Origin: Ophelia neglecta
Lineage: Eukaryota
Assembly (NCBI GenBank): GCA_965285935.1
Contig: OZ260667.1
Coordinates: 26,102,001-26,166,000, forward strand
DNA length: 64,000 bases
Reading direction: 5' to 3'
Shown: in pieces, positions 12,240-41,652 of the stretch
Layout of the letters: each line of letters opens with the position of its first letter
Position numbering within the stretch: position 1 is the first letter of the stretch
Notes under the pieces: model-generated
The model's input: the letters and a program-made list of their open reading frames with translations, nothing else
What the model was told of the DNA's origin: nothing
The model's database searches: none
Program-made: the position numbers and the translations under genes

Positions 12240-13960
12240 ATTGCCCTCGAGTAACTTCTACAATTTACCAATAATCGAACAATACACTGGTCAGTTTGGG
12301 GCATTATTTGATTGGAGGGCCACATGCAGTCATGCAGTTTATCTTTTCTTATTACATCATAACATGTCGCGGGCCCAATTCTATGCACATTTTGTCAGTA
12401 TGGTTAGTCATTTGTTACCTTTGCCCTTACTAGCTGCTACCCGTGTGTTATACATGGTCCAGATATATTCTAGGGCATTCCTTCTTTCTTCAAATGGGTA
12501 TGAACAGGGCTGGAGACTAATTTCTAGATTATTAATTTCATGCTCATACTGGTTTGTTCTTAGCAAACATAGGGCGTCTCTTTCATTCTGTAGAGCCGGA
12601 CACTGAAGCATCAGGTGTTGTAAATTATCACTTGCTATATTACACATCGGACACTCCTTTTTCGTGTCTTGGAAGTGTCTGCCCTCGTGAGTGAAGAGGC
12701 ACGAAGTACATGTCAGGAACTAAATAAGTATTTGACATCCTCGCACAGATTGCATTTTGCTTGCCGATGGCCACCACTCTAATTGGTTATACGTTGTCGA
12801 GTATGTAAGGCATGGGATTCTCCATTTGGCTTCAATGTTCTTTATAAATGTCTGACGGCAGTGCTTCTTCCAGTGGCTTTTTCGTGGGGTTATGCCACAA
12901 TTCACAATCGTTAGAGGAAATCCGAGGTGAGTAACACTCCTTTTTTCGGGAATTATTTCCCCGTTTATTTTTATTGGGGTGAAATTGTTCGCTGTACTGG
13001 TCCCCATCTATGGATATCACACTTTGAAGTATTAAAATCTATTCGCCACTTTTGACTATAGGTTTCAGCAGCTGAGGACATTTTTTGTAGGTGGGCATTG
13101 CTGGTAGCGGCTAAGGTTATGTCATCGGCGAAGGCCGGTCAAGATACGTCTATGCCATATAGGCGGCAAACAGGTTCGCGTAGCATACCCTCCCCTCCAC
13201 ATTTTAGGAATTCACATATAAGCTTATTAGGAGGATAGCAACATGGATAGCTTCCCCCGTGGTGTAATCCCGGAGGACCTTGAATGGTTTTGACATTGTG
13301 TTGCCAATTTGAACTCTAATTCTGAAATTTTTGTAGCAGTTCCGGAGTATCCAGTATAGTTTTCCCTTTATTCCATAATGGTACATCTTGTAGAATAGAC
13401 CGTCCGTCCATACAGTGTCAAATGCCTTGCGACAATCTAAAAGTGCTACATGGACATAGCCATTCTAAACTTTATTTTCTTCGATCATTTGCCGAAGCAA
13501 CAGTTTCGTGTGGATGCTGGAGCAACCTTTATGCGAGATTCCCTGGAGTTGGTGTATGACGTCATTCTTCCGAGTCCACTTGTCAAGTCTGTGTAGGATA
13601 ACACCTTCAAATATCTTACGAAGGCTGCTTAGAAGTGTGATTTTTCTATAATTATCTTTTTCCAGCGGATCTTTCTTTCCCTCTTTAAACAGTGGAATTT
13701 CTATGTCTTTCCGTAAAGCATTTAGAATTGTTTCTGTATTTATCACTGCATTAAATAAGATGGTTACCAGCTTTGTAATAAGTTGTCCTCCATACTTCAA
13801 GTGCTCGGTAGTTAAACCATCATAACCGCCTGCTTTCCCGAGTTTCATTTCTCTTATGACCTTTTCAACTTCAATTATTTCGATTTTATTTCGCAATATA
13901 GTGTCATCTGAGGTTCCAGGCTTTTCATCGACGTCTCTGTTGCTATAGCAACAAGTCTTA
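12240..13960 (-). pseudogene. 5'-truncated non-LTR retrotransposon ORF2 (RT + C-terminal Cys/His knuckle), RTE-X-like, disrupted
   Basis: Motifs KAGGYDGLTTEHLKYGG, IPLFKEGKKD...NYRKITLLS, LLDCRKAFDTVW, PAFADDITL (13121-13132 encodes FADD), WRIDFNTSKC and CPMC...HLMLQCPALQNER. In-frame stops and frameshifts split it over ORFs 13465-13971, 13204-13386, 12720-13007 and 12408-12647. The clade call is from motif recall. No TSD was found. Confidence 0.9.
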
Positions 13961-14154
13961 TAGAAAGACAATATAATTCCTTCTGCGCATGCACATGACA
14001 GTTGTAATGATTGGAAAAAAATACAATAAGATACAGTAAAGGGAAATGAACAAGCGTAATTTTCACTGTAAACGTAAGTCCAAAGAAAGCGATTAGTGTA
14101 TTATGTTGTTATCAATATTACGTTGAGGACAACTATTTGTGTTAACAACCAAGC

Positions 14155-15043
14155 CTATCCGTAATAATTTGTACGTCGTATGGTCAGGGAGCCAGTCACC
14201 TGCAGAAATATAAACAGAACTATCATTATAGATCCTATTATAAGTGCTACCAGTGAGCAGCGGAATGCTGTTTTCGAGCTGTTCTGCGCAGCATCAAATT
14301 GCCCACGGCCATTTTGGTCGTTAGTGCGCACCGCGTAGATGATCGCAGCGATACCTATCGGCCAGCAGCAGCAAATACAGGTGAAAATGGCAAACCCAAG
14401 GTAGCTGTTGGCCGGGTTGCCGGTTGTCTTGTCGGTAACAACTACAACCTGTTGCTGTGGTTGTCCAGGATAGGGCTGCTCTTGTGGTTGTCCAGGGTAG
14501 AACTGCTGTTGTGGTTGTCCAGGGTAGACCTGCTGTTGTGGTTGGCCCGGGTAAGGCTGCGGTTGTGGTTGTCCTGGATAGGGCGGCTGTTGTGGTTGTC
14601 CTGGATAGGGCGGCTGTTGTGGTTGTACCGGGTAGAACTGCTGTTGTGGTTGTCCTGGATAGGGCGGCTGTTGTGGTTGTACCGGGTAGAACTGCTGTTG
14701 TGGCTGTCCTGGATAAGGCTGCTGTTGTGGTGGATTGGTGTAAGCCTGACCAGCTGAGAATATAAGAAATGGGTATAACCGTAAATCAAGGAAGCATTTA
14801 ATTTTAAAAAAACTCTGATGATGTTTAATCTGTTTTTTTAACATCGAGAACAACTACACGACGGATTTTTCCAGAGACCTAACCACGCGCTCCGGAGAGA
14901 TTTTGTTCTTTTTATAAAATATGTGTTTACGTTCAGTTCATCCTCGTAAAGTGCAGCAACTAAGCGCTATTATTGTATTGATTATCATAAAGTGTCTAAT
15001 CAGTTTTACCGAAATATGAAGGAGGTGGTTGTTTTTCATCCAT
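14155..15043 (-). CDS. CD225/dispanin family protein (IFITM/PRRT1-like) with Pro/Gln/Tyr-rich N-terminus, about 210 aa
   Basis: Coding exon 15043-15010 (MDEKQPPPSYF, donor G|gtaaaa) splices in phase 1 to 14753-14155 (acceptor ttctcag|). CD225 domain: PANSYLGFAIFTCICCCWPIGIAAIIYAVRT...G.FDAAQNSSKTAFRCSLVALIIG plus a C-terminal TM. An acceptor just upstream of the ATG (exon starts at 15051) implies a non-coding first exon. Confidence 0.92.
14455..14730 (-). repeat. Coding 27-bp tandem repeat, ten units encoding PQQxxYP(G/V)Q
   Basis: Units: PQQQPYPGQ, PQQQFYPVQ, PQQPPYPGQ, PQQQFYPVQ, PQQPPYPGQ, PQQPPYPGQ, PQPQPYPGQ, PQQQVYPGQ, PQQQFYPGQ, PQEQPYPGQ. A 54-bp two-unit block is duplicated (about 14587-14694). 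Confidence 0.95.
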
Positions 15044-21399: not shown

Positions 21400-24300
21400 T
21401 CACGTGAACACGGGCGAATAACTAGTCCACACATATGTAAACATCAAGAACAGCATTGTATATATGAGCGAGGCGGTGTGTCTAGCAGAGGTGTTAAGGG
21501 AATGCGATTCTTGAGGGTCCTTAGAGTCTTTGTTGGCCTTCTGTTGGGAGCCGTCTGCTCTAGTCACTGTCTCGTCTGGCTCGAGCGAGATCCTATAATA
21601 TGTGTCCTCATCCTTAAAATCATATTCCTCCATGTCCTCTTCCGGTGGTCGTGGCTCCTGGGTAGCGAAAAACCAATTTATGTTTCTGTTGTCTTGCATA
21701 GGGACTGGAGTAGATTTGGTTGTTGGCTTTGATGGCTCTTTATGCTTACCGCGGGCGGAAGGCGTCCATGCTGTAGGGAAAGATGGGCGCTCTGTAAAAC
21801 TACTTGGGGTGGCTCTCATAGTCCTATATCCTCTATCTCTGTCGTCAGTTGGCATGATAACGTCATAGGTGACTTGAGTGTTTGCGTCCCATGGTGAATA
21901 TCTTGTGCGTGGACGATAGGTTGTGTAAATGACAGTAGTTGTACTGGTTGATTGAGTAGTTGTGGAAGGGGTGGTGAGAGGCAATGTTGTGATTTTAGAA
22001 ATTGCGGTAGATGGTTTTGAGATGGAAGTAGAGGATGTAATTACTGTGCTCGTACTTGATACGGTAGTAGTGGTCGCAGGTGCTCTAGTTGATTTCGTTG
22101 TTGTAGTAGTTTTGGTTGTGCCTAATGGAATTGGAATATTTGTCGTTGGTCTTTGGTTGTCATTCACCCCCGGGCGACCATGGACCTGTGTCCTACGGGT
22201 GGTTGACCGTGCTTCGTATGGGGATGTGATAAATATCCTATCTGATTCGAAGTTAGGACCTCCCATGGGAAAAACGTCAGAGATATTATTACCAAAGCTT
22301 CCGAAGGCACCAACGGGACCTTCTTCCCCACACAGGTCGATGTTCCACCATTTGTGGAAAAGCCTCTGTAGCTCTCCTTGTTGTTGTAGAGTGATAAGAG
22401 CTCGGTCAAACTCTGCCACCAGTGAATTGCCTTGCTTGAAAGCAAAGGAATAGTGTGTGATAGAGAGAAATTGGTCCAAAGATATGAGGTCACATGGTGG
22501 TTGTGAGGCTATGAACGCTGAGTCGGTCGACTCCACAATAAGTGCGAAGTTCTGGTCCCGGACTCTACGAAGCCCATTCTCCATGTTCGACACGATGTTA
22601 CTTCTGTCTTGTCGTATTCTTGACCACACATCTTTGTAAAGGGGCAACTTGGATTTCTTCAGGATCTTCTCTACTCGACTATGGCGTATCACACCAATAT
22701 TTACCTGAAGACGTACATATATAAACATATACAGAAAGGCAATATCACGTACTCATTTTTTCACTCTTCTACTAATATTAAACATTGTGCATATTTAGCA
22801 GTATATCGTCGAAAAAAGGAAAATTATCAGACAGATGACTACAATTTGCTTGTAGCGGTTTTCTCTTTGACCAAAATGATTCAGATCCTTTAGATAAAAA
22901 CATAACAGAATGAGAGAACATAATCTGTTCACCGATGTTTGGTTAAGTACATCTTCTAGGAAGAAGATTTCCAGCCCATCCTCGCTTTCAGGGGATTTCA
23001 TGATCAGAGAGAAGGTGGAGTGAAGGAATGGCTTGGAGAAATCCAAGATACGCTCCTTTTTAGCATCCACTGTGAAAGGTGCAGCCCCTACATCAGCTCC
23101 CTGGCGATAATTTCTTATACATTAAAATCAATAAACACTGGAAGTATATAGAATGTTTGGCATGCAAACTTCATTTCTTCAAGATATCCAAACAAATGTT
23201 AATAAGTTTTAAAGGAGTCTAACCGACTTAAAAAATTAAAACTATTATTTTCATTTTTGATATGTTTACGGGCCATATGATGTTCTTTTGTAATCCAACG
23301 TTTATAATCATGTAGTATATTGATTTATCACGCGACAGCATACTGGGTGTATGATCTCCTATAGGGGTCTTACTGATTTGCGGTAAACGGGCCATATGAT
23401 GTTCATGTAGTCTAACTTTAATATGAACGTTGTCGTACACTCTCAGCAAATAATGTTTAATTTTCTTATTCATTACAATATAGGTATGCCGAGTATAAAG
23501 CTGGATTATTATTACAATATCATTTGAAAATCCTCTAAAGCAATGGATTTGGACACCCTACCCGAGTCAAGATGTCTCCTATCATTCCGGACCATCTAAG
23601 TGCGCCTTTTTCACGTGACCTCTTTCCAAATGTTCGCTTGAGTCGCCACTGGTAGTCAAAGGGCACTAGTTGAGACATGAGGCTTACAAGATCAACAATG
23701 TAACCCTCAAAGGCTCCTTGCGGATTTCCCTCAGTCGCCCTCATAACGTATGGCGGTTTCAGTATCGTTGTCATAACTAAATTAATTGGTGGCACGGTCG
23801 ACGAGGATGCTAAAATTAATAAGGATAAAACATTAACATGGAATGTCCGAGGAAAGCAATATCATCAAATATGTTAATGTGATAAATCGGTTTCCAAATG
23901 AGTAATACGGCGATCAAGCCCACGGCTTGAGAAAAAAAAGTCATGGCCAAAATGTCTGAGCAGAAAAGACTGAAATGTTTAGTTTTCCTATGCGTTACAA
24001 CCTCCTGGTCATAAGAATCAATGAAAACACAACCTTGAATGGCGATTTCCGGCTGCAGCTGATGTGACAATTCGGGCTGTTTGCTCATACCCTCTGCGCA
24101 AGTGCCATTCCAAAATTTGCTCCTGAGCTGTTGCCAACGTCTCCTGTTAGCCATGACCGTAGTTATCCACTGATCGAATAGTGGCAGCCAGACACTGTTA
24201 TTCTGAAACCCCATGGCGTAGTATTGTCCTACATCAAAAGTGGAAGTAGTTATTAGGTCGCAGGGTTCGTCTTTTATGTAATAGTCTGCGCTCTCTTTCT

Positions 24301-25526
24301 CCATGACTAGGGCAAAGTTTGTTCGGCGAACTCTAGCAAATGCCTCGTGCACGTTGTTTACAACGTTCCTGCCAGAGTTTGCTTGGATATTTCTGTACAG
24401 TGTTTGTAATGTGTTGTCATTTGTGTGCCTGAGTATCTGCCAAGCAGTGTCTCGATGGACGACGCCATAAGCGATATTTGTCTGGTGAATGAGATCTTGG
24501 AAATTACGAATTTGTGACGGTCTTCCCCCGAGTGGACGTCTGAGTATGGCCGTGAGGCGAAGATGGTTGATCGGGACCGACAGTGACACGGTTCGCTCGT
24601 GGCGCGAAGTTGCTAGGATCGGCGCCAGCGCCATGTCCGCTTCCTACAATAGATGAAATAGTTTAAAATTTAGCACGTAGTTCCATTTACCCTGTCAATC
24701 TCCGTCATCTGGGTGAAGATAGCTTCGCATCATTTTTCGAACCGAGGAGTCGCCATGAAATAACATGGTGCGTTTAAACATGGTAACACTTACCCCTCGC
24801 GTTAGCTGTCCAATCAGGCCAGTCCATATGCCGCCCTCTAACTCTGTCCCCATTTGACCGTCACCCACCAACGACAACTGGAAAAGTTGATTCATAACTA
24901 ATAAGTCCAAAATCCCTCCGAATATGTATTGGAATAACGCCTTCAAGTTGCTTAAAGAAAGTACCAATACCTTGCTTACTTTATTACAATTGATAATGAA
25001 TTTAGAAAGTTTCTGACTTACCTGATAAGTTATATCCAAATCTCTACAGAACTCACGAAGAAGGTCACTATAAAATCCCGAATATCGCTCATTTCCAATC
25101 AGGCCAGGCATCCAGTTCAATGTAATGTATGGTTCATTCTAAAATAAAGAAATGACAGCGGTGAAAATCAAAAGGCCCTGAACTATGTTGACGATCCGCA
25201 GACAATTAAGCAGACGTAAATACAGCATGGAATTACTAAAAATGTATTTTAAATAAATATAACATTCTAATATTATAGAAAAACAATTATTTGTCTTTAA
25301 AAACAAATGCACATCACAATTCAGTCTTGTAACCTTAATGGCCAATTTGTCGTACTAGTGTATTCCGTGATATTGCCATTGACTTGGAATCACCTTTACA
25401 TTATTTTCATCGTCATTAAAACATAGTTTACATATAATCATACCTGTATCGTAAGCACTTGTAGCTTGGATGATGGCAACGGAGGAAGCGACGAAATAAA
25501 TGTTCCACGATTTCGAGGTCCTCTGC
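21400..25526 (-). CDS. Channel-less tandem iGluR ligand-binding-domain protein: (S1-S2)x2 + mucin-like stalk + GPI-like/hydrophobic C-terminus; 5' partial, at least 852 aa
   Basis: Frame-consistent GT-AG exons: 25526-25444, 25138-25022, 24877-24794, 24643-24091, 23809-23562, 23100-22933, 22704-21400. Domain 1: LQVLTIQNEPY, YSGFYSDLL, WTGLIGQLTRGEADMALAP, YG, FALVME, EPCDL, FWNGTC. Domain 2: MTTILKPPYVM, FEGYIVDLV, WSGMIGDILTRGADVGAAPFT, DFSKPF, FALIVEST, PPCDL, GELQRLFHKWW..DLC. No premature stop and no TM between S1 and S2. Confidence 0.9.
21916..22149 (-). other. Thr/Ser/Pro-rich mucin-like stalk (coding)
   Basis: Translation PTTNIPIPLGTTKTTTTTKSTRAPATTTTVSSTSTVITSSTSISKPSTAISKITTLPLTTPSTTTQSTSTTTVIYTTY. 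Confidence 0.85.
22330..23790 (-). other. iGluR-type ligand-binding domain 2 (S1+S2 fused)
   Basis: The S1 end LIMKSP is joined by ESEDGLE to the S2 start IFFLEDVLNQTS inside exon 23100-22933. The domain ends at KWWNIDLC. Confidence 0.9.
24091..25470 (-). other. iGluR-type ligand-binding domain 1 (S1+S2 fused)
   Basis: The S1 end ILRRP is joined by LGGRPSQ to the S2 start IRNFQDLIHQTNIAYG inside exon 24643-24091. Confidence 0.88.
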
Positions 25527-28029
25527 CTAGAAAAAAATCGTTTTAATATCATTTTGGTATATGCTATGAAACTGGTGTGGGTAAGCGTAAGAAGGATTTT
25601 GAGATAATGCTCAATGAAAGTTTCATTCTAAAGATCCAATACGAATATAATGCTACGTGGCAGTGACTTAATCTTGTGTGTCCATTCACATTCACAAGAA
25701 AATCTTAGTTCAGGGGCAAAGAGCTACATCTAGATTGTCGAACGTTGATAATTGCTTCGGATTTTAGCCCACAAAGAAGTTAAAAAAGTGTAAAACAATA
25801 TTCCTAGCTGGGTGTCAGCGTCTCAGATGAGAATATTAGTGGCTCTAAGTATTATCTCAACCTTTGGTTTACATTTAATATGTGTTGACAGCCGCTTATT
25901 TAAAACGATTTCTATTTTTATAACGTTGAAAACAAAGGTACGTTGGAGAAGAATATTGCAAAAATATACTTAATTGGGGTGGATAGTTAAGAATTATGGC
26001 ATTTTAAAAATAATAGTGCCCTATGCCTACCATCAACATTAGCAACATATGAAATGAAAGAAGGAAAAAATGACACCCTGAAAAGTCATCTTAGGGTAAG
26101 AAGATAAAGGAGACGTAAGTAAGCCATAAACCATACATTTTGATAGGCTCTGACAGATGTAAAAACACTTTACCGAAAATAAATCAGCAATAAGGGTGTT
26201 AACAGTGTTTGACATTTAATTTTTTCATCCTACTAGATGCTCGAATAGCAGCCACTAACTTAATATGTCATAAGCTACTGCATGTGGGTACCTGATCCAA
26301 GATAAATACCTTATTGATATTAATGAACTTCTGACGAACAAGGAATCTCAAGAACAGGAGGATGCCGCCTAGTTGTTATTTAGGCCCTATATCATGTTTT
26401 CGTTACAACAACAAGATAATGACTCTAATAAGATAAATTAATTTGTGGTCTGTTTTTAGAAATATCTACCATATGTAAAGATAGTTTGTAAGCATGTTTG
26501 CTAATAAAGAATTAAATATACAGCTTTTGGCTAGAAAAGTATGGATCATCCTGATAAGTCAACCAGATACTACATTCCGTTTACCGCTTATCAAGCCTTG
26601 CGAGGCTGATCACAGGGTAAGCGTCCATTATGTTTCTTGCTAAAATTTAAATTCATAAGTGACGGGCATGCATTCGCGTGGAGTTTACTTTCAATGTTTG
26701 TTTATTTTTAATTGGTATGTTTTGTTACTAAGAAAAATAGAAATATATTTTCTACTATCATCCGTATTACGGTAAACAATGAATTTCTTCCGTATGTGAA
26801 TGCAGAGAAGTTAAAATAAAAACATATGAATAAAGTTTGTAAAAGTGCCATGGAGTAGTCATTAACATATTCTTTTTTTAAAAGAAAGTTTGAAAAAATG
26901 AAAATCACGAATTAAAAACTAACTTTATACTGCCAATCAGACAGATTTTCGTTCAGGCCGGAAGGGTATTCGATCCGAATTATTAAGCATACTTGCAATT
27001 TTAAACATAGGCAAGTCCAGATTGTAGAAAATGGCAGGAAAGTGGAAATAAACAATATGTTGAACGTGTGCTATGACATACAGCATGGTAAGACCTACAG
27101 AAAGTACATGCCCGTATGTATGCATTTAGATCGAAAACAGTTTTCCTAAACATAGAGAACACCTCAGTTCTAACCAGAAACACAAACACATTAACATTGT
27201 TTCTATTCATCAAATCAGCTGAACATATTACTCTGAGAATGTACTTTTCCGACATATGACTACCAGGTCAATGACAATATAAGTTTAGCTGTCGTGAAAA
27301 GCTAACCTTCATATATATCACAGCACCTTCTCTTTCATAATTCCAGAGCTGTCAAGCAGTATAGACGAATGCAATGTTTTACATTAATTTATCATATGAC
27401 GGTAATTGGTGATCATAATTCTGGTAATGACTATTTAGATACAGATTATAAGGCACTATTTATTGATGTGTGTTCTAAAGTATCAAACACCAACGTGTTT
27501 ATGGTGCCTGCGAATGTAAAAGAGCTTTGATGATTCTCCTCCAGGACAGATCATTTTTATTCAAAATTGTGGATGGAACCTGAGTTGCCCCTCGTGTCTT
27601 TCGCACATCAGCACATAGTATAATGTATTACCATCGTCATGTGTATTTATGAAAATTTGGCAATACACTTTAACCTAATGATAATCTTGCCTTTCCACGC
27701 ATAGGACTATCTGTTCAAATCAGGCTACACGCCTAAAGCCTAAAGCAAGGCAATGTCACTTAATATACAAATAACTGTATCGCTTTTCTTTTCACACTTG
27801 GCTGTTTATATACACATTAGCATGTATCATTGTGATAAAAGTTTACCTAAAATGACATTGGCATTTCACATAATCTTGGAAGAATATCTATTTTATGCCT
27901 GAATTAACACGGATGCCGCTAAAAAAAGAGAACTCCGTATGAACGTCTCAATTCACTAGCGTCTGACAGCAAAACCATTGATTTTGTGGGTTATTCTATA
28001 TTTATTTCCAAGCCCACCCACATTCTTAC

Positions 28030-28131
28030 CTTTTTAGAAGTTAGCACCGTTATTGAGACATTGTGCTTCTGATAAAAACAAAAAGCAATAAATAAGAATG
28101 TAATTGCCATTATGGGACTAAGAGAACTCAT
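28030..28131 (-). CDS. Candidate signal-peptide first exon of the tandem-LBD gene (uncertain)
   Basis: ATG-MSSLSPIMAITFLFIAFCFYQKHNVSITVLTSKK with a strong donor AAG|gtaaga. It is phase 0, so it is compatible with exon 25138 (NEPY) but not with the phase-1 exon 25526. The hydrophobic stretch could simply be a polypyrimidine tract ending in cag. Confidence 0.3.
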
Positions 28132-31100
28132 TTTAGTGCGCCAATAGAAGCTAGAAAGCGCCTAATGGAATCAAAAGTGTTATACATGTACTCGATTAAC
28201 TGGTTGATTTTAATGAGTGACCTTGTTCTGAACCATAACAAATGACAGTTATGGTCCTGCTGGTTCCAAAACTGGGGATTTGAGTATGTTGACGCATAGA
28301 ACAGAACTACAAAGAAGATCTTGGATCGGCCTTCCGGTTATAGACTGAATGCAGTCTCTCATATCTATATTCTAGGTCAATTATATTTGCCACGGGCGCT
28401 TCAATTTGACATATCAAACTAGAGATCGTGGTGTTGACCACCAGGTAAAAAAAGAATATCAAGTTAGATCATGGTACACAAAACGTCTTTTATATCCGAC
28501 AGAATTACGACCTGAAAAAAGAGCCAATAATCCAAGTACCAGCAAATAATTTCCTTTCCCTAAATGTGCTAATTGCGTCTTTTTATCAACGCGTTGCTGA
28601 TAGATATCTAGGTATGAACCTTAAACCACGGGCATTTCCATCCTAAGAGAATGCGAGTTCCATGGCAATTGCCCAGATCAATCCGCTTATATTTGTTATG
28701 GCTGTGATAAGACGTCATACGTCCATATGACTCCATTATCAGGCTGTGTCGCTGTCGACCTCGCTAACCCTTGGAGTGTAACAAGCCACATTGCCTGCAG
28801 AATATCTTTCCGCGAACGATTGGTTGTGTCAGTAAATTCTAAATTGATTTTGCTCCGCAGTCGGAATGTTATTTGGCGGTGGCCTGCTATAGCCCTCACA
28901 GTATAACTTATTAACCCCCTGGTCCCTTCTAACCAAATGGTGCTCCTGGTTCTGGTCACCCCTTCCTTCCACAACTATCAAAACTAATTGGCCCGCTGTA
29001 GTTATACGTGACCATCTGTCTTTATTAAACAATGAGCCAATACTTTCGTTTGAACTCGTGTTATGCAAACCACCAGCTGTAATGGAAAACAAAGAGCACA
29101 TGTCTGAAGAGCAAACCGCGGATATTCTTGTAGTACTGCAGCGTGAAAAGATATTCGGCAAATGGAACTAGTAATAGCAAATATGGGGCAAGGCACAAAA
29201 GTTATTCTCACAATTCCAACCCAAGTTCAATTAGTGCAAAGAAAAATAACTGAAATATAAAATATGCTTTAAATTATAAACTCTGAGTAGTAGCCTACGG
29301 TCGTCCGTCCCATTTTAAACCAATCATATAAACGTTTTCTGAGGTTGACAAAAAACGCCTCCATAGTGACCTCTGGCTATTCATCACAGCGCTTAAGAGA
29401 ATTCTTAAGTTGATGAGTATTATAAACGGTCATAGCGCTTTACGGTACTTTACGGTACTTTGTAAGGATTGTGCCATATTGTTGTTATTATAGAAGAGTA
29501 AGTTTTAAATAATATTTTAAAAGAGGATTGTGTTGTTTTGTTCGTTCTAGCTATTAAAACATTTACTGAAAGTGTATTTTCTTCTTATAATTTACCAGTT
29601 ATAATTCATATTCATAGCGATAACCTTCTATGCTTTGGAGGCATTCCTAGCATTGCCTGCCATGTCCTGGAACACATACTTAGCGTGCTATTTCTAACTG
29701 ATTTATTGTAGATACGCTTAATAGACAAAGACATCCCATACGTTTGACCAGTAGCTCCTTCGGCACGAACATGATTTATTTCTGAAAGGCTTCAGCATGT
29801 TGGTGGGCTTGTATTGACACTAAGAACTGGAAGGCGGAGTAAAGTAAAATAGACAAAACATCTTAGAAACTTAGCATTGACTAATGATCTGCCATATGAC
29901 CCGACGTCCGAAGGCTAAAAGATCTTAAAATGTTTATCATACAAGATCCGTCAGTATATATCAGCCCGGAATGTGGACGGACAAGGAGGCACTTTCTGGA
30001 CTATACATGGAATTAACGTATCAAGCTTTGGGTATCACTGGCATCCGCATAACAAAGATATTTCATTTATAAGATAATGTCGTTTGTATGTCTGAACTAT
30101 GGCAGAAAGCAAGGTAACACAAATAGCACATGAGACCTAACTGGTTTCTTCTGAGGGCAAATAAAATTGTCTGGTTACTGACTGTTTCCAATTGAATTCG
30201 ACATTCAATGTCCATGGATGCTGATTACTTTGTCGTCCTATTTGCCAAACGTTTGAAATTGATGCAATCGCCGTCTTATAACTTCTTTATCCCACGTCTC
30301 AACCCACTCGTTTGTCGAAAAGAAATGTAACTTCACCTTTCTGGGCGAAATAGGAGTGTTTCTTGAAATTTAAATAACGATGTCCTCCAGGTTGCAGATA
30401 TAGAAGGGAATGAGGCTTTTGAGAGTACTGCTAAAGCAGGCCACCACACTGTGAAAACGGCTAGCAAAGCTAGCAATTACTTATTCTTGGCCAGCATGAG
30501 CTTAAACACGCCGAGCAAATATTGGACTGTTAAAGCCTTATTGAATCTCACTACTCAATATGGACATTGTACCTGTAATCATTCGCCATTGGCAGATGCT
30601 ATTGGAATGAATGGTGCGTGGGATGCTATTAATTTACCAACATAAAACTATGGAGGGGTGGCAAGGGTCGTGTTTGGATAGCAGGCAGACAAAAACAGTT
30701 TTTGAGAGCATTGACAATAATAGATATAAAACGTAGCATGGTTCTTAATTTATTATGGACAGCAAACTGCAGCATAGCAGTCAACAAATCAAGCGCAGCT
30801 CCACGCCGATCTTACACGCCGACGATGAGTAAAAAGGATATACCATATTGACACTATATGCGGTAACAATTTTACATGAAATATGTTGTTTAAATGATAT
30901 CTTAGTATGTCTAATAAGACAAGTAATGTTAAGCCTATAATACTAAATTCACCTGCCGACTATGAAAAAAGGACATAGGAGAGAGAACACCGAATATTAG
31001 ATGAACGTTGGAGTATCCCACTTATTGGCTTATTCGATATATATTTTTATTGGATTGCACTATTTCTGTGTCGGTGCAAGCGTGGCAATGCACTCGTGTT

Positions 31101-32539
31101 GCGTAGACTAAACATCTTAAAGAAAGACCAGAACAAGAAGTTTTATTATACCTATCTTCTATATATGCCTGAAAGTAACATATACTGAATTTTAGGTTGA
31201 GTTTCGTAAATAGTAGATTAGTATGAAGAGGTACCCGTTTCTACATTTACAAATTGGTACGATCAGCGTTTGCCTTTCCGCCTTGTCTTTAGGTATACTT
31301 AAGGAAATGTAGAAAAAAACAAATTGAATGACAGTATCCGAGGCTAGCCTATACTCCCAGAAGAAGATACACATAGAACAGCATAATTCAAATCAGTAAA
31401 CTCTGAAAAAAGTCACAGTTGATATAAAAAATATGAACCGTTTTGAAATAGGCGTCTCTTTTCATAACTCTCTTCCGAATACAAAATTCATTCCTTAGGT
31501 CGATCCAGATTCGACACAATGTCATTTTTTCTCGTGTGTTACGTTTTTTAACGATTACTTTTTAACAATTAATTAATGGCTCGTAAGGGTCCGAAAGTAA
31601 TTTGTTGCATTTACATGACATAAAAATGTACATTTACAAGTACAATTCAGCGTATTTGTTACTCAGTTCTTCCTAAAGATAAGGCCGATTGAAATCTTCT
31701 CATTTCTGTTTTTTGCAAGGGGTTTTCAAGATTTAGGAACAAAGTTGCTTACATCGTTTGTCTCCGGAAATACATTGTAAATTGATGAGAAACAGCACGA
31801 GAAATATCAACATGTACCCATGCAGACAGATCTTTGAAACTTCCCAGTACGCATATTCATGTATCTTTCTGGAACATTCGGTTCTAAGGATCCATAGAAT
31901 TAAAGGATGAACAGTGTTCTAGGGGGTTTAGGTTCCCCATCAAGGAGATATAAAGTTTTATGACTGCTGAACCCAGCAGATTACCTTTTTATCACAATTG
32001 ATCTTTAGTCTCTATAGTATTGGGTATTTCGTCCCTAGATCAATTATCGACAATCAGTTGATTAAGCTTTTTATTTGAGCAGGTCCTTGGTGAGCACCGA
32101 AGGAATTCGTTATAATGGGGGCTATGGCTCGGGGGAGCAATTTGCATCTTGTGTTAGCTATAATGGTAATTACCAGCAAAGGAATGTGGTGGAGATATTC
32201 TGAATTACGGCGATTTACTTTGTAAATTGCGTTGGACACAACCGCCCTCAAGGAAGTTATCAATCAGCAGTGTGGACAGGACTAAACCCCGACGAGCAAT
32301 GAGAAAGTCGACGCAGAAGGCCACAATATTGATCAATGTGAAACTATTTCACTGCGAGATACCATGCATGCATGCATGTAAAACTTCTTGATTGAAACAA
32401 ATAAATAAAATAAGTGTGGACACATATGGGTTTTTCTAACATTTACTTGTAAGGCTGTTTCCGATGCCCTAAAAGATAGATCAAGTGTGGCATCTGAGAA
32501 TAATTTACAACGTTCATTTAGTATATGGACTATTCGTGA

Positions 32540-33090
32540 ATACGGAGTTGCTCTGTCTGCTGGGTATTCACTCCCGTTTTCTATGAAAACCAGTCATTTT
32601 GTGCTAATCTGATGTCAGCCATCAATTCATTAAATTACCCATATTAATTGAATTTTTCAGCGAATATACAAGTACAACTTATTAATATCAGAACTACTCG
32701 GATATGTTGTTATATTGCCAGATAACCAACGCAACCTTTATTAACAAGCCACATGTCCGAAGCAAAAAATTGGTCTTGTGTGTATTGAGAAAATTTCAAA
32801 TGTATATATTACAAATATGAGAGAGGTCTAACATAGATTCTTCTTTGGCATATTTCATCCCTGCCCTGAGTTGACTATTGACACGTTTGTATTGTGCTAT
32901 GAGGAAAAGCTGTTGACTGTTTAATTGCACGTTATATCAATTTAACGTTTATTTTCTATCTTAATTTGTATTTGATTTACATGTTTTTTTTACTGTTTGG
33001 GTCTTGATGGTTGACGTATTGATTTCATGTACAATTCCTGTTAAATGATTTTGCTTTATCTGCCGATTATCCACTCCCTCATATTGTCTA
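32540..33090 (-). mobile_element. Degenerate LINE relic, same family as 20050-21050
   Basis: GGCATATTTCATCCCTGCCCTGAGTTGACTATTGA (about 32847) matches GGCATATTTCATCTCTGTCCTGGGTTGACCATTGA (about 20108). TCTGC......CACTCCC motifs at about 32556 and 33059 match 20188. Confidence 0.5.
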
Positions 33091-36000
33091 TGCTTAATTA
33101 CGTGATATTAATTGGAAGTAATTACTATAATTTCCTACTTTCAAAGTCACATGCATGTATCTCATGTAAGACACTGAATTATTACCATCGTATGAATTTC
33201 TAACGATGGTCATGTGAGCCGCAATCCATCATACAGTGCAGACGTTTCAAGGCATTTGCAGTTATAAATAGTAACGAGTGAGACCCGAAAGCATCATTAT
33301 CGGAGCTGTATAATTTTTTTCACAAATCATTCGCTGAATGCAAATTGAGAGAGTGGTCTGCAATGAGAAGGCATTCGTGATCGAAGACAATAGTTACCTT
33401 CCTTAATTGGCTTATATATAGAGTTTATATGGCTGGCTCCTGTGTATTATGACCTTTTTGCTTTAGGTTTAATGCAAACTATTGACAGGTCATTTGTGTG
33501 ACATCTTGAAATACGTATACGGCTGCAATATATCCAAAACTATAACATTTTCTTATAAGAATATTGGAAAAGATATTCGGCAGATGCGACTGAATACGTT
33601 ATCAAAGATAAGTATCTTTTATTTATCAATGAAGGTAAGGATACACCCATTCAGATCCACGACGTGCTTAGGGGACGAGGTAATAGCTTTGCATATATTC
33701 CTTTATATGCAGGATCATCAAATAATACAGCTGATTATATTTGCAACCACCCGACTATCTATTAGTGCTCAAGAGCAATACTTTTCGTGCACTGTTCTTT
33801 CATTTGGAACGTTAATTGAAGAGCGGTGTATACGTAAACGCATTCTTTTCCCACGTACCATTAGCTGTCTTTTTAACCTTAGTCTAACCTGTCTAGTCAA
33901 GGAGTGCATAATTGGTTTAGTTACAGTGCGTAATCACTGAAAATTATAAATGAGTGTGTCAAAAAATCATTACCATCATAAAGTAACCATACAAAGAAAG
34001 GATCAAAAAATCCAAAATGCAACGGTGTCTTTAGGATTTAGCCATGTCGTCAAATGTATTATTTTTGTCCCTAAACTATTCGAAAAGGTGGTGCTGTCTG
34101 AAAACAGTTCATTTGCAAGTTATTTGCACGAGCCTCAACAATATGTATGCCATATTGTGAGCAGTGAGGAACCAACCCTATCTGAGCCTAATAGGTATGA
34201 TGTTTCGAGGAGCATTTCTGGCGGCAACACTGTGATTCACATGAGTCTGTGGGTCATTATATTTTTTAATCGTGTTTACACTAGATTAATATCATTGGTG
34301 TTCTTTTTTAATTGGAGGGAAACAATTGTGTTATGTGCTCATTCATTTACACGTGAAAACGCATTTATACATGAACGTTACAAGTCGTTCTATGAAGACC
34401 CAATGTCTTCTGTCAATTTCTTATTTCCATACCTGCATGTAGCTGTTTTATAGTATATCTTAAATCGCATTGATTTGTGTATCTGGCATCCTCCCTCATT
34501 TTGAAATCATTGTGTATTTTAGTTGTTTAATATTTCGTCCAATTCATTGATTTTGTAAGGTTATATCGGCACGACTTTTATTCAACGCGCCTTTACATTT
34601 TGGATAACTGTTAATCACTTCGCATTGCAAGTAATATCAGTTGACATCTGATTACAAGCGAATTTGTGTTCGAAAACCGACTAAGCGTGATGTGTCGAAT
34701 TGCCAGCCACTTGCTGTTGAACTCAAATATTATACAGCCGGAATAACTGTATATGTGACGGGTGAATAGTGAGTTTGTAAGATCGCCTACGAACAATTTA
34801 TGTTACACTTGTACGCATAGGAAATCTAAAGCAAAGCCAAGTGAAAAACGATTCTAGCTATTCTAACTTAGTGGATTACGTTTTGTTTCGAATTAGAAAA
34901 AACAAACCGCCTGCTGTCAACATATGGAGAAAGGGTTAGTGGTGTAGAAGCTATGTGTTCAGGACACTGTCAGGGTGATAAGGAAAGTGGAGAGAAAGGA
35001 ATGGGGTAAGTGTATAGCCTTGAGTATAACCAGCCGTTTCTGCTGGGGACGGGGACATGAGCGTTTTCTCTGTGAAGTTAGCGGTTGCTGAATATGTCCA
35101 ATTTAATGGAATGTTCTTGCCTAACGACTTCATTTGGTCCGACTGGTATCATCGGAGTTTTTTGCATCCGATCTGGTTGTAAACACATAAGCTGCACCTT
35201 TGATAAAAACCCCGGACAGTCCGCCCGGGGGTTGCGCCAAAACTGTTTAATGTATACTTTTAAATTTCTAACACAACAGGCTGAAAACTTACATCAGGCA
35301 AGGCATGGAAGCGAAACGAGCAGAATACTTACATTGCTCATAACCCTATGATCTGAGTTAACATGACGATTGATTTGGTATTTTTCTTTCCCTGTTGGCA
35401 CACATGCAATTTTTCCATGATCGTGGATTTCCTGTCTTGGTATGCCTAAAGAATATTTGTCTAACAGTTCTACTGAGGGAAGCGATTACACGGGTATAAT
35501 GACAACGTTCCATTTGTAGACTAGCCAATCGCAAGGAGTTAAACCAGACTATCTCAGTAACATCAACCTTTCGGTGAAACACACCGATTCTATACGCACT
35601 TCATAGGATATAATCGCATGTGAAGACTATAAAGCAAAGGCGGTTGGAATAAACTTTTTCATTTCATGCACTTACAAATACAATACCTGTGATAATAAAC
35701 TGAGGCCATTTCAGAAATGAAGTTTTTCCCATTCAATTTAGTTTGCTAAGTTTGGGGCAATAAACCCAATAATTATCCCAAATTAACCTAAATTACATTC
35801 AAACAAGCGGAATATGACGAGAGGGGAAAACTATAGAAACTATGGGTAAATGGCAGACGACACATGAGGGGAAATCTTATAAACATGGGTTATGATTGAA
35901 CACCGGCAGACAATTATATGTCACTTGGTCTATGATGGAGGGAATATAAAACTTACTTGAAAACCACTCAGTAAATGCCAAGCATCTGGCATGCGTTCAA

Positions 36001-39000
36001 ACCAAATAACTGGTAGAATAATACGAATTCCCAGTGTTGAAAACTGCAATAATGGAGTGTCATATATAAAATCAAATGATGAACATAATGCATGTGGAAT
36101 GGGCATGACTGCCCCTAAAAGTACTATGAAGGAACAAACCGACTGTAGTTGTCTGTATACCAGGAAGAATAAATGGCAGATTAATAATGTGTGAAATGAT
36201 TATTATTGCAAATTATCATATATGTCATCAGTAACTGTTGTTAATATCTTAATATAAATGGCTGGTTTTGTCTGTCCATTTCGTAATTTGACGGAGGCAT
36301 CAATTTAACCGTGACAAATTACATCCCGCCTTTATTCAACTTTGTACTTGTTGGGATTTTATTATTAATTTGGCGTAGGTGACATGATGCAGACTTGAGA
36401 AAAACCAGCTTATAATCACATTACATGTTGGTGAATGTGTCATAAATTCGTGTGTGTGCCTGCTTAGCTTCTGGCTGTCCGTTTTATTGTCCAGTATGCA
36501 AAACCGCCATGACTGGTTACAAATTGGTGCAATCGTTGCGATTGAACATTTGGCCAGCCATTGACTTTGCGATGATTGGAATTCTATGCTTCAATGCTAC
36601 AATAGCAAAGATGTGACCAGCTGAAAACAACTATCAGTAACATTTATGTTGTATGGGAAGAGATGTTCGTTGGAAGAGAATGTGCAAAAATACACCACCG
36701 CATCCCAAAGCATTGAAATGAGTATGAGGTTATGGAGCAATTAGTATCTTACTAAATTCGTAGGCTCTGTAAGAGTGCTTTTCGACCTTCAGTCTAGAAA
36801 ATATAGAGCAACTTAGATGGATAAAACAAGAGAAATGACAGACATTTACATGCTCGTCATCAACGTCCTGCCCATCTACAGCTGCGAAAGGCTTTCGAGA
36901 ATCACAGCACAAGGAGTAATAGGTGTCCTGGTACCAACCAATTACTGGCTTCAGAGACTTGTCGTTAAAAGGATAATGTGACAGTTATACCAATTCCTAC
37001 ATAGCCTAAAAATATTATCTAGGTCAAACACATATCTTTGCGAATGATTCCATATTGTTTCAATGGATGTTCTGCGGACAACAAAAGCTGCTGTAGCCTT
37101 TATAACGGCTCCTTTATGGACAGTTGTTAAGTTACACAGTATTCTCTTTGCTTGCAGTCTGGTAATTAGTCGTAGCAAGGGTATGATTATAAGACAAATG
37201 ATATTAAGGACACTTCATAGCTAAAGCATTATTTCGTTTCATTCAAAATGATTTAAACAATCACTTTTTTCCTTTCGCCATATGAACAGGTGTGGCTATA
37301 TAGACTATCAAATATAACAACAGCCACAGCATGCCCTCAGCTGAACGGTATTGCTTCCTTCACGTATAATAGGCATTATCATAATGATGGGTTGGAGATG
37401 GATAATGTACGTTCATTTATTATCCTTCCTACAAATTTACATGAATAGATTCCCTTAACGCTGTCTGGTTCGGTTTTGACATACTATAGCCTGTCGAGAT
37501 AGCGCATAGAAGTATTCAAACAGTGGATGTTTCCTTTTTTGAATTACTTTTGAAAAGGCTAGACCCTGTTATTCAAAATAATGTTTCCTTCTTTGATGTT
37601 CGTGAATGTATTTAATCGCACCTCCATGGTTTTGCGAAGTGTCAATAAACTTCTGACTCAAGTATTTTTTTGAGTGATTACATATATTTGAGAATTTTTC
37701 TCTGTTAATATTTCCCACAGGCTGTGACTAAACAATCTATTGCCCTGATCTGCCAGGCTCCTGTCATGACCTACGTCCGGGATTTGTTACGTTGATATGA
37801 CATATACCAGTCTACCGCAGGCTATCACAAATGTTTTGATTTAAGACATCCTCCCAGTCTGGTTAGTCTATTTCTCGTCAAAAACTAATGGTTTAAATTG
37901 TTTATTTTGTCTTAAAAAAAATTTGATTTTTCTTGAAAAAAGCCATGACGTCGGCGGTCCGATTTGGTGCAATACAAGAATGCTTATCAACAAAAAATAT
38001 ATAGAGTGCAACCAACGGTGACCACTTCGTGACTCCTAGGTCAAGGCAATAAACTTACCACGAAAACCGACAGACCAGACCAGATCAGGCAGATCAGAGC
38101 ACCAGAGCATAGATTATGCTGTAAGAGTAACTACGATCCGACGAAAAAATTAACATAAAGCGTAAACCACTACCCAAATATGAGATATGAGTGGAGATAA
38201 GGGCTTCTGTCAAGTATAGATATATCATACCAAGTCAAGAAAAGGCTCTGTCTGAAATCTGGGTTCTGTCAATGTGGATTGACGGAGCTGATCCCTTTGT
38301 ACCTTACTCTCTGCCCCACATCTTAGTTCCACAAACAATTTATCTGTAGTTGGTCAGCTCCCTGTTGCTTCTGAAGAAATATGTTGATGTGTTTATAATA
38401 TGTCACTCACCGGCAGCTCAATAAATTAAATCAGTGCGAGTTGGCTCCACGTCTTGTGATATCTTTGTCTAACTTGTCTTAAGTGTCAGTTAGTTTAGCA
38501 AGGGTAAACACTTTTTTTACGTTAACGCCCTAGGTGTTGTTAATTGCCTTCTGGTGCAGTGATTTCATAACCCTTTCACTGACACTACCTTTTTCTTGTT
38601 CACATATATTGGTGAGCAGGGCATTCGGCAGGAAGTACTCCCTTTTCCGCGCATATATCGCAAACCAATAACTTTGTAGCTCTGATAAAGCATACGTTAT
38701 CGCGAGATATGTAGGCGGACCAACCGATAGAAAGGTTATTACATCGAAGCTATGAGGCAGGTTTGATTTCTATAAATATTAAACACATTGCAGGGTGGGC
38801 GGGAAATCACAATTTATTTAGGTAGATCGAGGGTGTTGGGGCTTGTCAATCTGTATGAGTTACCTCAGATATGGGGTAGGTCTCATTACAGAGCTTATAC
38901 CTATATGCTAGGTTAAATTTACCATGGTCTGGCAAAAATACCTAGGTTTTCAATTCTGACAAAGCTCATAAGCCATCATATGCATGTCACTATTTCGCCA

Positions 39001-41571: not shown

Positions 41572-41652
41572 GGAACGCTTCATTACCAGGAATCAATGGT
41601 CTTCGCGGCAAAGCACCTCAGACAACATTATTTTCTGGTAATGTAGCGTTCC
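41572..41652. repeat. 81-nt inverted repeat / hairpin
   Basis: GGAACGCTTCATTACCAGGA (41572-41591) versus the reverse complement of 41633-41652, GGAACGCTACATTACCAGAA (18/20). Confidence 0.75.

Follow-up and report, generated by a model that had tools for sequence, protein, structure and literature searches.

The ligand-binding domains (LBDs) of ionotropic glutamate receptors (iGluRs) are textbook modules that have been studied as parts of channels, and S1S2 constructs have been engineered in order to obtain the LBD alone. The Ionotropic Receptors (IRs) of protostomes are said, after the work of Benton in 2009 and Croset in 2010, to carry iGluR-derived LBDs in which at least one of the R/T/E glutamate contacts has been replaced and ligand specificity has diversified. 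Elsewhere in the animal kingdom, the mollusc acetylcholine-binding protein (AChBP) and SmGBP of Schistosoma, a truncated protein resembling metabotropic glutamate receptors, have kept a ligand-binding module and dropped the membrane signalling part, according to the passages of PMC3423370 and PMC3206071 that deal with them. Here we describe a gene of Ophelia neglecta that codes for two iGluR-type LBDs in tandem and for no channel. It lies in a stretch of 64,000 nucleotides (nt) of assembly GCA_965285935.1 (contig OZ260667.1, forward-strand positions 26,102,001 to 26,166,000), the whole of which was analysed and is called the window below. The gene amounts to a natural S1S2 construct, doubled within one chain and probably tethered to the membrane, and the pocket arginine R485 of the iGluRs, invariant in functional studies, has been removed from it twice independently.

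Two tandem ligand-binding domains without a pore

All coordinates are positions within the window, all exons of the gene lie on the minus strand, and searches were done exon by exon; statements about the protein as a whole rest on a natural orthologue, P0155 of Paralvinella palmiformis (KAK2155635.1, 869 amino acids), and not on a joined model of the window gene. The window is AT-rich (GC 0.31-0.40) and its short open segments broken by stops have the look of an intron-bearing animal gene. Seven such segments succeed one another from about 25526 to 21400, with canonical AG/GT borders and compatible phases, and the gene holds at least six introns. The combined length of exons 0, A, B and C is 837 nt, and they make a symmetrical phase 1-1 module. 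The C-terminal end of exon 0 (...KLQVLTIQ) provides the first beta-strand of domain 1 and matches RRLLMVATIQ/IEPY of P0155. Upstream of it, a heuristic scan of 25527-45000 returned four rows from three start codons, the best of which (hydrophobicity 3.59) is a candidate signal-peptide exon located 6.2 kb away, with a donor phase that fits the phase-1 acceptor of exon 0. An ATG at 25552 was also considered as the start of the gene and was rejected because no join to exon A is possible in its frame; the proper frame of 25526-25444 is the one that ends in ...LQVLTIQ. The locus is an intact multi-exon animal gene, with a splice model drawn from its sequence and from its orthologues.

The two domains are each built without interruption. 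Exon C leads from the end of S1 (...LSVPINHLRLTAILRRP) through a linker of about ten residues that includes LGGRPSQ directly into S2 (IRNFQDLIHQTNIAYG...), and in exon E the S1 of domain 2 likewise runs through a short linker into S2 (...SLIMKSPESEDGLEIFFLEDVLNQTS). The best matches of exon C in the PDB are engineered S1S2 constructs of GluK4 and GluK1, aligned across the S1-S2 junction, and the top match of exon E is the GluA2 S1S2 construct 1ftk/1gr2, in an alignment that again passes through the linker. Since S1 and S2 are joined within single exons, no pore exon can be spliced between them, and the introns between exons C and D (281 nt) and between exons E and F (228 nt) are too short to hide an M1-M3 pore. 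Channel-bearing iGluRs gave no tblastn match of their pore part in the window, where their LBD parts alone matched. The Pfam family Lig_chan (PF00060) gave 41 matches in a six-frame search of the 762-Mb assembly (on C1, C2, C5, C7, C8 and C9) and none on the window's own contig, C12. Neither a further LBD copy nor an amino-terminal domain was found in the window by tblastn with the six exon translations and ten reference proteins. Two noise-level tblastn matches to iGluR-type queries, at 5084-5317 on the plus strand (E 0.006, with P0063) and at 41045-41185 on the minus strand (E 0.023, with P0155), are probably noise.

The fold itself was approached both with profiles and with a structural model. 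Exon D matches the Pfam family Lig_chan-Glu_bd (PF10613) with 50.8 bits against a cut-off of 30, the open reading frame (ORF) holding exons A and B stays just below the same cut-off with 28.5 bits, and exon F reaches 16 bits with SBP_bac_3 (PF00497), under the cut-off of 26.4. An AlphaFold2 model of exon C, which holds most of domain 1, was computed from an 83-row alignment and has a mean predicted local distance difference test (pLDDT) value of 94.8 and a predicted template modelling (TM) score of 0.87. Foldseek aligned 183-196 columns of this model with the LBDs of GluK1, GluK4, GluA2 and GluD1 in the PDB, with E-values down to 1.7e-14, and the query TM scores to crystal structures of the GluK1, GluA2 and GluD1 LBDs are 0.83-0.87; the best belong to antagonist-bound forms of GluK1, and apo GluD1 gives 0.81. 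In the 83-row alignment the two cysteines of the presumed disulfide are invariant (C128) or conserved in at least 90% of rows (C182). A preliminary description of this DNA, drawn up from its letters, had held that the fold is preserved, and this is borne out for domain 1 by both model and sequence and for domain 2 by sequence. We conclude that both domains have the iGluR-LBD fold and that the gene codes for two tandem clamshells of the iGluR type (AMPA/kainate/delta-like), with no pore, no M1-M4 segments and no amino-terminal domain.

After domain 2, exon F codes for about 300 more residues. Two motifs stand out in this stretch, between which the fraction of Ser, Thr and Pro rises to as much as 0.68 per 40 residues. 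The protein ends with ...LNTSARHT followed by 24 mostly hydrophobic residues that run to the stop (the tail starts at 21474), and has no cytoplasmic extension. The hydrophobic tail is present in all seven orthologue rows examined, the RIF(I/L)TSP motif in three of the seven, and the WFF(A/V)T..PRP motif with its acidic, Tyr-rich run in four. This part of the protein would be a mucin-like stalk with an attachment signal for glycosylphosphatidylinositol (GPI). The rows tied to the stalk motifs are P0122, P0155, P0034 and P0125, which are distant orthologues, and the two motifs may be sites of interaction or of Tyr sulfation.

The gene is a member of a channel-less LBD protein family found largely in annelids. 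A HMMER search of the whole protein library with exon C returned 334 proteins (E<=0.001), most of which are 180-370 residues long and align in a single piece that spans the S1-S2 junction, and 116 rows have a continuous S1-linker-S2. The named members come from Capitella teleta, Helobdella robusta, Owenia fusiformis and Paralvinella palmiformis, along with one nematode, Plectus sambesii; they are annotated as hypothetical or uncharacterized and bear at most a domain-based UniRef label. The nearest ESM Atlas cluster has 147 members, with Annelida as the commonest phylum. P0001 is the best match of exon C (59% identity), and P0122 is 65% identical. The full-length tandem orthologue P0155 is collinear with exons A to F of the window, with identities of 55 (exon A against residues 29-66), 54, 30, 41, 49 and 43%, respectively. 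It shows two Lig_chan-Glu_bd stretches (146 bits in all), no Lig_chan, and 71 bits with SBP_bac_3. A word-based protein search with this orthologue yielded nine proteins from 8000 scored candidates and no new full-length tandem orthologue. P0063 and P0127 were left out of the tandem relatives because both carry Lig_chan and resemble ordinary channel genes whose models have been fused.

Within the Ophelia genome, continuous S1-linker-S2 exons number at least twelve on C12, the window's own included, and one on C5; the S2 exon of the window's domain 2 was matched separately, beyond those twelve. Arg is present at R485 in most of these paralogues, whose open frame continues into a hydrophobic stretch after the last Cys. 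In Capitella teleta, the partial protein P0053 (ELU15633.1) matches exons A, B, E and F at 50, 54, 55 and 48% identity and skips the counterparts of exons C and D, either by misprediction or as a real isoform or architecture; in the window, exons C and D together measure 801 nt, so that a splice from B to E would be in frame and would give a single hybrid clamshell. In a full-text literature search that left supplementary files aside, no account of iGluR-LBD proteins without a channel was found. In the large iGluR phylogeny of Ramos-Vicente et al. 2018, sequences with fewer than four conserved residues of the SYTANLAAF motif were discarded, and the channel-less family would be lost from that phylogeny because of this filter.

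The arginine position and the other pocket contacts

Pocket positions are numbered below as in mature GluA2, in which we take the relevant residues to be Y450, P478, T480, R485, G653-S654-T655, E705, M708, Y732 and the C718-C773 pair. Equivalences were drawn from exon-wise phmmer alignments against all PDB chains, which are ungapped through the motifs. The corresponding residues have the precursor numbers Y471, P499, T501, R506, G674-S-T676 and L725-E in the alignment given by Wang et al. 2026 (PMC13648236). In the functional iGluRs aligned there, R506, which corresponds to R485, is called "absolutely conserved", and the first residue of helix F is Gly in all of the aligned glutamate-selective receptors and in none of the others.

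The preliminary description had proposed, by comparison with GluA2, that both pockets lack the residues that hold the carboxylate and keep the Glu that holds the amine. The strings on which it leaned (APILATSRHERTVSLSVP, APFTVDAKKERILDFSKP, FALVME, FALIVE, PCDL...WNGTC and PCDL...WWNIDLC) are all found on the minus strand, and nearly all of its assignments hold. Exon C aligns from ADMALAP... to ...FWNGT with the S1S2 constructs of the kainate receptors GluK4 (E 3.6e-14) and GluK1 (E 1.4e-10), in which P478 is retained in domain 1, T480 is replaced by Leu, R485 by His, and G653-S654-T655 by D-T-A. The His codon is CAC and adjoins a CGC Arg codon. In domain 2, the alignment of exon E to the GluA2 S1S2 chain retains P478 and T480 and places Lys at R485; exon F, aligned with the LBD chains of Drosophila GluR1A and GluK1 (E 2.4e-15), has S-R-V for G-S-T. 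The alignments of exons C and F show E705, Y732 and both cysteines retained in each domain. For Y450 the proposal stands in one domain and falters in the other: when exon B is aligned with GluK4 and GluN3, its Met falls on the Tyr of DGxYG, as claimed for domain 1, whereas the Phe claimed for domain 2 (23628-23630) is uncertain because it needs a two-residue shift from the ungapped HMMER alignment, which gives Lys (23622-23624). Two of the positions involved, the Met codon at 24851-24853 and the second Cys codon of domain 2 at 22330-22332, fall outside the range 22480-24640 that had been given for the pockets. Measured against an amino-acid-binding pocket, then, both domains have an acidic residue (Glu) at E705 and neither has Arg at R485 (His in domain 1, Lys in domain 2); measured against a glutamate-selective pocket, both lack the Gly and the Thr that come first and third in the helix-F motif (D-T-A and S-R-V).

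Of the 116 channel-less rows, 111 have a residue at position 485, and in 98 of these it is Arg; because of this prevalence its loss in the window is more than chance. Six of the 13 exceptions are domain-2 orthologues and two are domain 1 of the window and P0001; domain 2 of the window, split over two exons, is not included in the 111. The history of the position was followed on a tree of the S2 region (164 rows, 140 columns, quick IQ-TREE search, NMDA2 outgroup) in which 78 of the 159 inner branches are unresolved. The nine-row clade that holds domain 2 (support 99, starred) consists of domain-2 parts from tandem-type proteins. The partner of domain 1 is P0001 (99, starred), and the two belong to a 14-row clade (support 94) along with domain 1 of Paralvinella. 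Both clades nest in a larger one of 115 rows (support 83, not starred), of which 98 are channel-less, 17 unknown and none channel-bearing. From this placement, the tandem arrangement is older than the divergence of these annelids, and the ancestors of both domains were already channel-less. The channel-less label requires 25 changes by parsimony, of which starred branches force only eight, and the tree leaves unsettled both whether the pore was lost once or several times and whether domains 1 and 2 are sisters.

In the clade of domain 2, Arg is found at position 485 in none of the seven rows with data (K/Q/H/H/Y/Q/Q), and positions 480 (T/I/V/V/V/R/R) and 655 are variable. Ser occupies position 653 in eight rows of nine (entropy 0.50), position 654 is basic (R/H/K) in all nine, Glu is kept at 705 in six, position 708 is acidic in eight, and Tyr732 is present in all nine (entropy 0). 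The entropies of T480 (1.84), R485 (1.84) and E705 (1.22) may be set beside a column mean of 1.26. Judged from these residue counts, the conserved cleft residues of domain 2 are all on lobe 2, whereas the lobe-1 contacts drift. The loss of the arginine in domain 2 is old and ancestral to the orthologue group. The pattern of domain 2 is both clear and testable: the basic residue of lobe 1 has been lost, and a basic residue of lobe 2, at S654, has been kept throughout.

The clade of domain 1 looks different. Among the 11 other rows with data, 9 have retained the arginine at 485, and His at this position is confined to the window and P0001, the same two rows that alone have Arg or Lys at position 484, where 9 of the 11 others have Glu or Asp. 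The acidic or amide residue (D/E/N) found at S654 in 11 of 12 other rows has been lost from these two as well. Position 705 is Glu or Asp in 13 of the 14 rows, the exception being domain 1 of Paralvinella with Ser, and entropies reach 2.73 at T480 and 3.09 at M708, against a mean of 1.92. The loss in domain 1 is recent and came with coupled changes. We conclude that the two losses of the arginine are independent events of very different age.

Pocket remodelling took other forms elsewhere in the family. The canonical-looking combination of R, G-S-T and E is found only in some paralogue rows, such as L009; Pro occupies the E705 column in 38 of the 116 channel-less rows and a hydrophobic residue (I/V/L) the S654 column in 50. 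The largest subclade of channel-less paralogues (C12 loci L002-L007) keeps R485 and has lost other contacts. Remodelling thus differs between subclades.

What the clamshells may bind

The reading that we favour is that of a tethered, non-ionotropic protein whose clamshells bind small ligands in a non-canonical way, and we give it an even chance of being right. The two clamshells would be carried at the cell surface by an O-glycosylated, mucin-like stalk with a GPI anchor, and each would open and close on a small ligand that is not L-glutamate in its canonical pose. That pose is unlikely because neither clamshell retains the Arg of lobe 1 by which the alpha-carboxylate is gripped. The proposal that the ligand is probably not glutamate, made in the preliminary description, is in agreement with this loss and with the Asp or Ser that replaces Gly as the first residue of helix F, and its further suggestion, that the ligand may differ between the domains, fits their different pocket signatures and their placement in different clades. 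In domain 2 the ligand contacts would have shifted to lobe 2, namely to Ser653, the basic residue at 654, Glu705 in most cases, the acidic residue at 708 and Tyr732. In domain 1, the recent loss of Arg would have occurred by a change from a CGC-type codon to CAC, while position 484 went from acidic to basic and the acidic residue typical of the clade at S654 disappeared. The output is presumed to be non-ionotropic and could consist of capture or buffering of the ligand, or of a ligand-dependent contact with a membrane partner, made through the clamshells or through the conserved stalk motifs. As to the nature of the ligand, the idea of an amine, which has the retained Glu705 as its one point in favour, is weakened by the retention of this residue in only six of nine domain-2 clade rows, and the basic pair K485 and R654 of domain 2 would suit an anion or carboxylate, or a zwitterion, at least as well as an amine.

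Several points weigh against this reading. It is still conceivable that K485 pairs with a carboxylate, and R484 of domain 1 or K485 and R654 of domain 2 might reach the carboxylate site. A decaying, ligand-free pocket would likewise be expected to vary at T480, R485 and E705, as the domain-2 orthologues do, and the identity to Paralvinella of exon C (30%) as compared to exon A (55%) fits relaxed constraint and diversification alike. The fold of domain 2 is read from sequence, the GPI anchor from the shape of the tail, and the 5' end with its signal peptide is a candidate exon. A search of sequencing runs found none recorded as RNA that holds the locus. Three runs of unlabelled kind, all from one study, hold 88-95% of the sampled words of the locus; they look like DNA because intron words are present too.

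It is also conceivable, if rather doubtful, that at least one clamshell still binds an alpha-amino acid or zwitterion such as glycine, alanine, D-serine or gamma-aminobutyric acid (GABA), the carboxylate being held by substitute basic residues (K485 and/or R654 in domain 2, R484 or H485 in domain 1) and the amine by Glu705. The basic residue at 654 in every row of the domain-2 clade and the Glu at 705 in two thirds of them would suit such a pocket, in which P478, Y732 and the disulfide cysteines are moreover intact. In domain 1 the change of positions 484-485 from [E/D]-R to [R/K]-H, seen in the window and P0001 only, looks like a shift of the basic residue by one position. The S-x-V motif of helix F is typical of glycine-selective receptors in the alignment of Wang et al. 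2026 (PMC13648236), and yet none of the functional receptors aligned there does without this Arg. K485 is not a maintained substitute, because position 485 varies among the domain-2 orthologues. In the model of exon C, the helix with H15 spans residues 13-18 and no insertion or deletion separates it from GluK1 and GluK4, so that R14 of the exon sits at the V484 position and not at R485.

Alternatively, the clamshells might bind no small molecule at all, the protein acting as a surface scaffold or adhesion protein through the clamshell surfaces and the stalk motifs. We regard this as unlikely. It would account for the variation of canonical contacts between orthologues (T480, R485 and T655 in domain 2, T480 and M708 in the domain-1 clade), for the Ser at E705 in Paralvinella domain 1 and for the retention of the stalk motifs RIFITSPYEA and WFFATxxPRP across distant orthologues, in three and four of the seven rows. 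The lobe-2 pocket positions of domain 2 (653, 654, 708 and 732) are nevertheless more conserved than the average column, 705 stays acidic in all rows but one of the domain-1 clade, and the exon C model is a well-formed bilobed clamshell whose best matches are antagonist-bound GluK1 LBDs. A scaffold role keeps its place among the candidates because the lobe-1 positions vary and the S2 lobe of domain 1 evolves fast (30% against 55% identity).

Finally, an artefact, whether a decaying pseudogene or a normal receptor with its pore exons elsewhere or lost in assembly, is highly improbable: the lack of an RNA-labelled run and the candidate status of the first exon speak for it, and against it stand the seven successive open exons with canonical splice sites and matching phases, the junction of S1 and S2 inside exons C and E, the same layout in orthologues of other species (P0155, collinear over exons A to F, and P0001 and P0122 with their 59 and 65% identity), the lack of PF00060 on C12 and the three DNA-like runs that hold most of the sampled words.

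If small-ligand binding by the tethered clamshells is indeed what the gene provides, its domains would be ready-made soluble material for structural and ligand-screening work, and the family may represent a non-ionotropic branch of glutamate-receptor evolution. A broader proposition, which we consider quite unlikely, is that the annelid channel-less LBD proteins, the tandem one included, are surface-tethered capture modules and that the two-pocket protein is a channel-less two-ligand sensor. Were it true, they would be a glutamate-receptor counterpart of AChBP or of the bacterial solute-binding proteins and would bind transmitters or environmental chemicals, either to buffer the ligand or so that the closed clamshell docks onto iGluR or IR channels or other membrane partners; the two rebuilt pockets on one stalk would then reflect coincidence detection or broad-range sensing.

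Features of the locus and comparison with known systems

The features of the gene are collected in Table 1 together with two neighbouring ORFs. The 232-residue ORF has an N-terminal Pro/Gln-rich repeat (PQQQxYPGQPQQ...) and, in its C-terminal part, two hydrophobic segments and the Cys cluster FTCICCCWP; it recalls, as we presume, the CD225/dispanin (PRRT/SynDIG-like) proteins. The 168-residue ORF contains ...KAGGYDGLTTEHLKYGG... and is presumably a fragment of a retroelement reverse transcriptase. GC and AT skew are locally unusual at 12-16 kb of the window.

Table 1. Features of the tandem LBD gene and of neighbouring ORFs, as positions within the window.
Feature	Position	Strand	Description
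Candidate first exon	31753..31813	-	Met and signal-peptide-like hydrophobic stretch MLIFLVLFLINLQCISGDKR; phase-1 GTAAGC donor; heuristic scan
Exon 0	25444..25526	-	83 nt; phase-1 acceptor, phase-0 donor CAG/GTATGA
Exon A	25022..25138	-	39 codons; first part of domain 1 S1: NEPYITLNWMPGLIGNERYSGFY...
Exon B	24794..24877	-	28 codons; domain 1 S1; holds the Y450-equivalent Met
Y450-equivalent Met, exon B	24851-24853	-	Domain 1
Exon C	24091..24643	-	553 nt, open; end of domain 1 S1, linker RRPLGGRPSQ, whole S2; phase-1 donor
Arg at 484, exon C	24602-24604	-	Domain 1 pocket codon
His at R485, exon C	24599-24601	-	Domain 1 pocket codon
D-T-A, exon C	24443-24451	-	Domain 1 pocket codons
E705, exon C	24299-24301	-	Domain 1 pocket codon
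Y732, exon C	24218-24220	-	Domain 1 pocket codon
Cys pair, exon C	24260-24262 and 24098-24100	-
Exon D	23562..23809	-	248 nt; phase-1 acceptor; inter-domain linker ASSSTVPP and first part of domain 2 S1
Exon E	22933..23100	-	56 codons; end of domain 2 S1, linker KSPESEDGLE, S2 start EDVLNQTS
Thr at T480, exon E	23071-23073	-	Domain 2 pocket codon
Lys at R485, exon E	23056-23058	-	Domain 2 pocket codon
Exon F	21400..22704	-	434 codons and stop; domain 2 S2, stalk, hydrophobic C-terminal tail
S-R-V, exon F	22672-22680	-	Domain 2 pocket codons
E705, exon F	22531-22533	-	Domain 2 pocket codon
Asp at M708, exon F	22522-22524	-	Domain 2 pocket codon
Y732, exon F	22450-22452	-	Domain 2 pocket codon
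Cys pair, exon F	22492-22494 and 22330-22332	-
Stalk motif 1, exon F	22210-22239	-	RIFITSPYEA
Stalk motif 2, exon F	21643-21684	-	NINWFFATQEPRPP; followed by acidic, Tyr-rich sequence
Neighbouring ORF	14155..14853	-	232 amino acids
Neighbouring ORF	13465..13971	-	168 amino acids

Compared to the LBDs of GluK1, GluK4, GluA2 and GluD1, the protein shares the bilobed fold and keeps P478, E705, Y732 and the C718-C773 pair, and its natural linker lies at the very site where crystallographers have put an artificial GT linker in their LBD constructs. It differs from iGluRs in lacking the M1-M4 pore, the amino-terminal domain and the C-terminal cytoplasmic tail, in carrying two LBDs per chain with R485 changed to His and Lys and GST to DTA and SRV, and in that a mucin-like stalk and a tail resembling a GPI signal come after its LBDs. 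The single-LBD, S1S2-only paralogues (Capitella ELT90099.1, Helobdella XP_009010895.1 and Owenia CAH1779393.1 among them) have the same continuous S1-linker-S2 exon, the same Cys pair and a hydrophobic tail, and those of Ophelia share chromosome C12 with the window (the twelve exons mentioned above, with one more on C5). They have one LBD and no long stalk, whereas the window protein is tandem and stalked; and most of that family keeps R485 (98/111), many paralogues having lost E705 instead, whereas two losses of R485 have occurred in the window protein.

The protostome IRs resemble the window protein in the divergence of their LBDs from the canonical glutamate contacts, but they keep the channel domain and act as ligand-gated channels, which the window protein, having no channel, does not share. 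With family 3 of the bacterial solute-binding proteins (SBP_bac_3) it has in common a stand-alone type-II clamshell with no channel in the chain, as the 71 bits of P0155 illustrate; the window exons, however, fit Lig_chan-Glu_bd better and have the disulfide cysteines of iGluRs, spliceosomal introns and animal iGluR relatives. Like AChBP and SmGBP, as the passages on them in PMC3423370 and PMC3206071 present these proteins, it keeps the ligand-binding module of a receptor alone, although the folds are unrelated, being respectively the ectodomain of a Cys-loop receptor and a class-C Venus flytrap, and AChBP is soluble and pentameric. The window protein would work most like a stand-alone solute-binding protein, by analogy with AChBP and SmGBP. 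By fold and descent its domains are iGluR LBDs of the AMPA/kainate/delta type, yet without the channel that defines an iGluR or an IR. What is new here is that a channel-less iGluR-LBD family has a member built in tandem and set on a stalk, from which R485 has been lost in two independent events.

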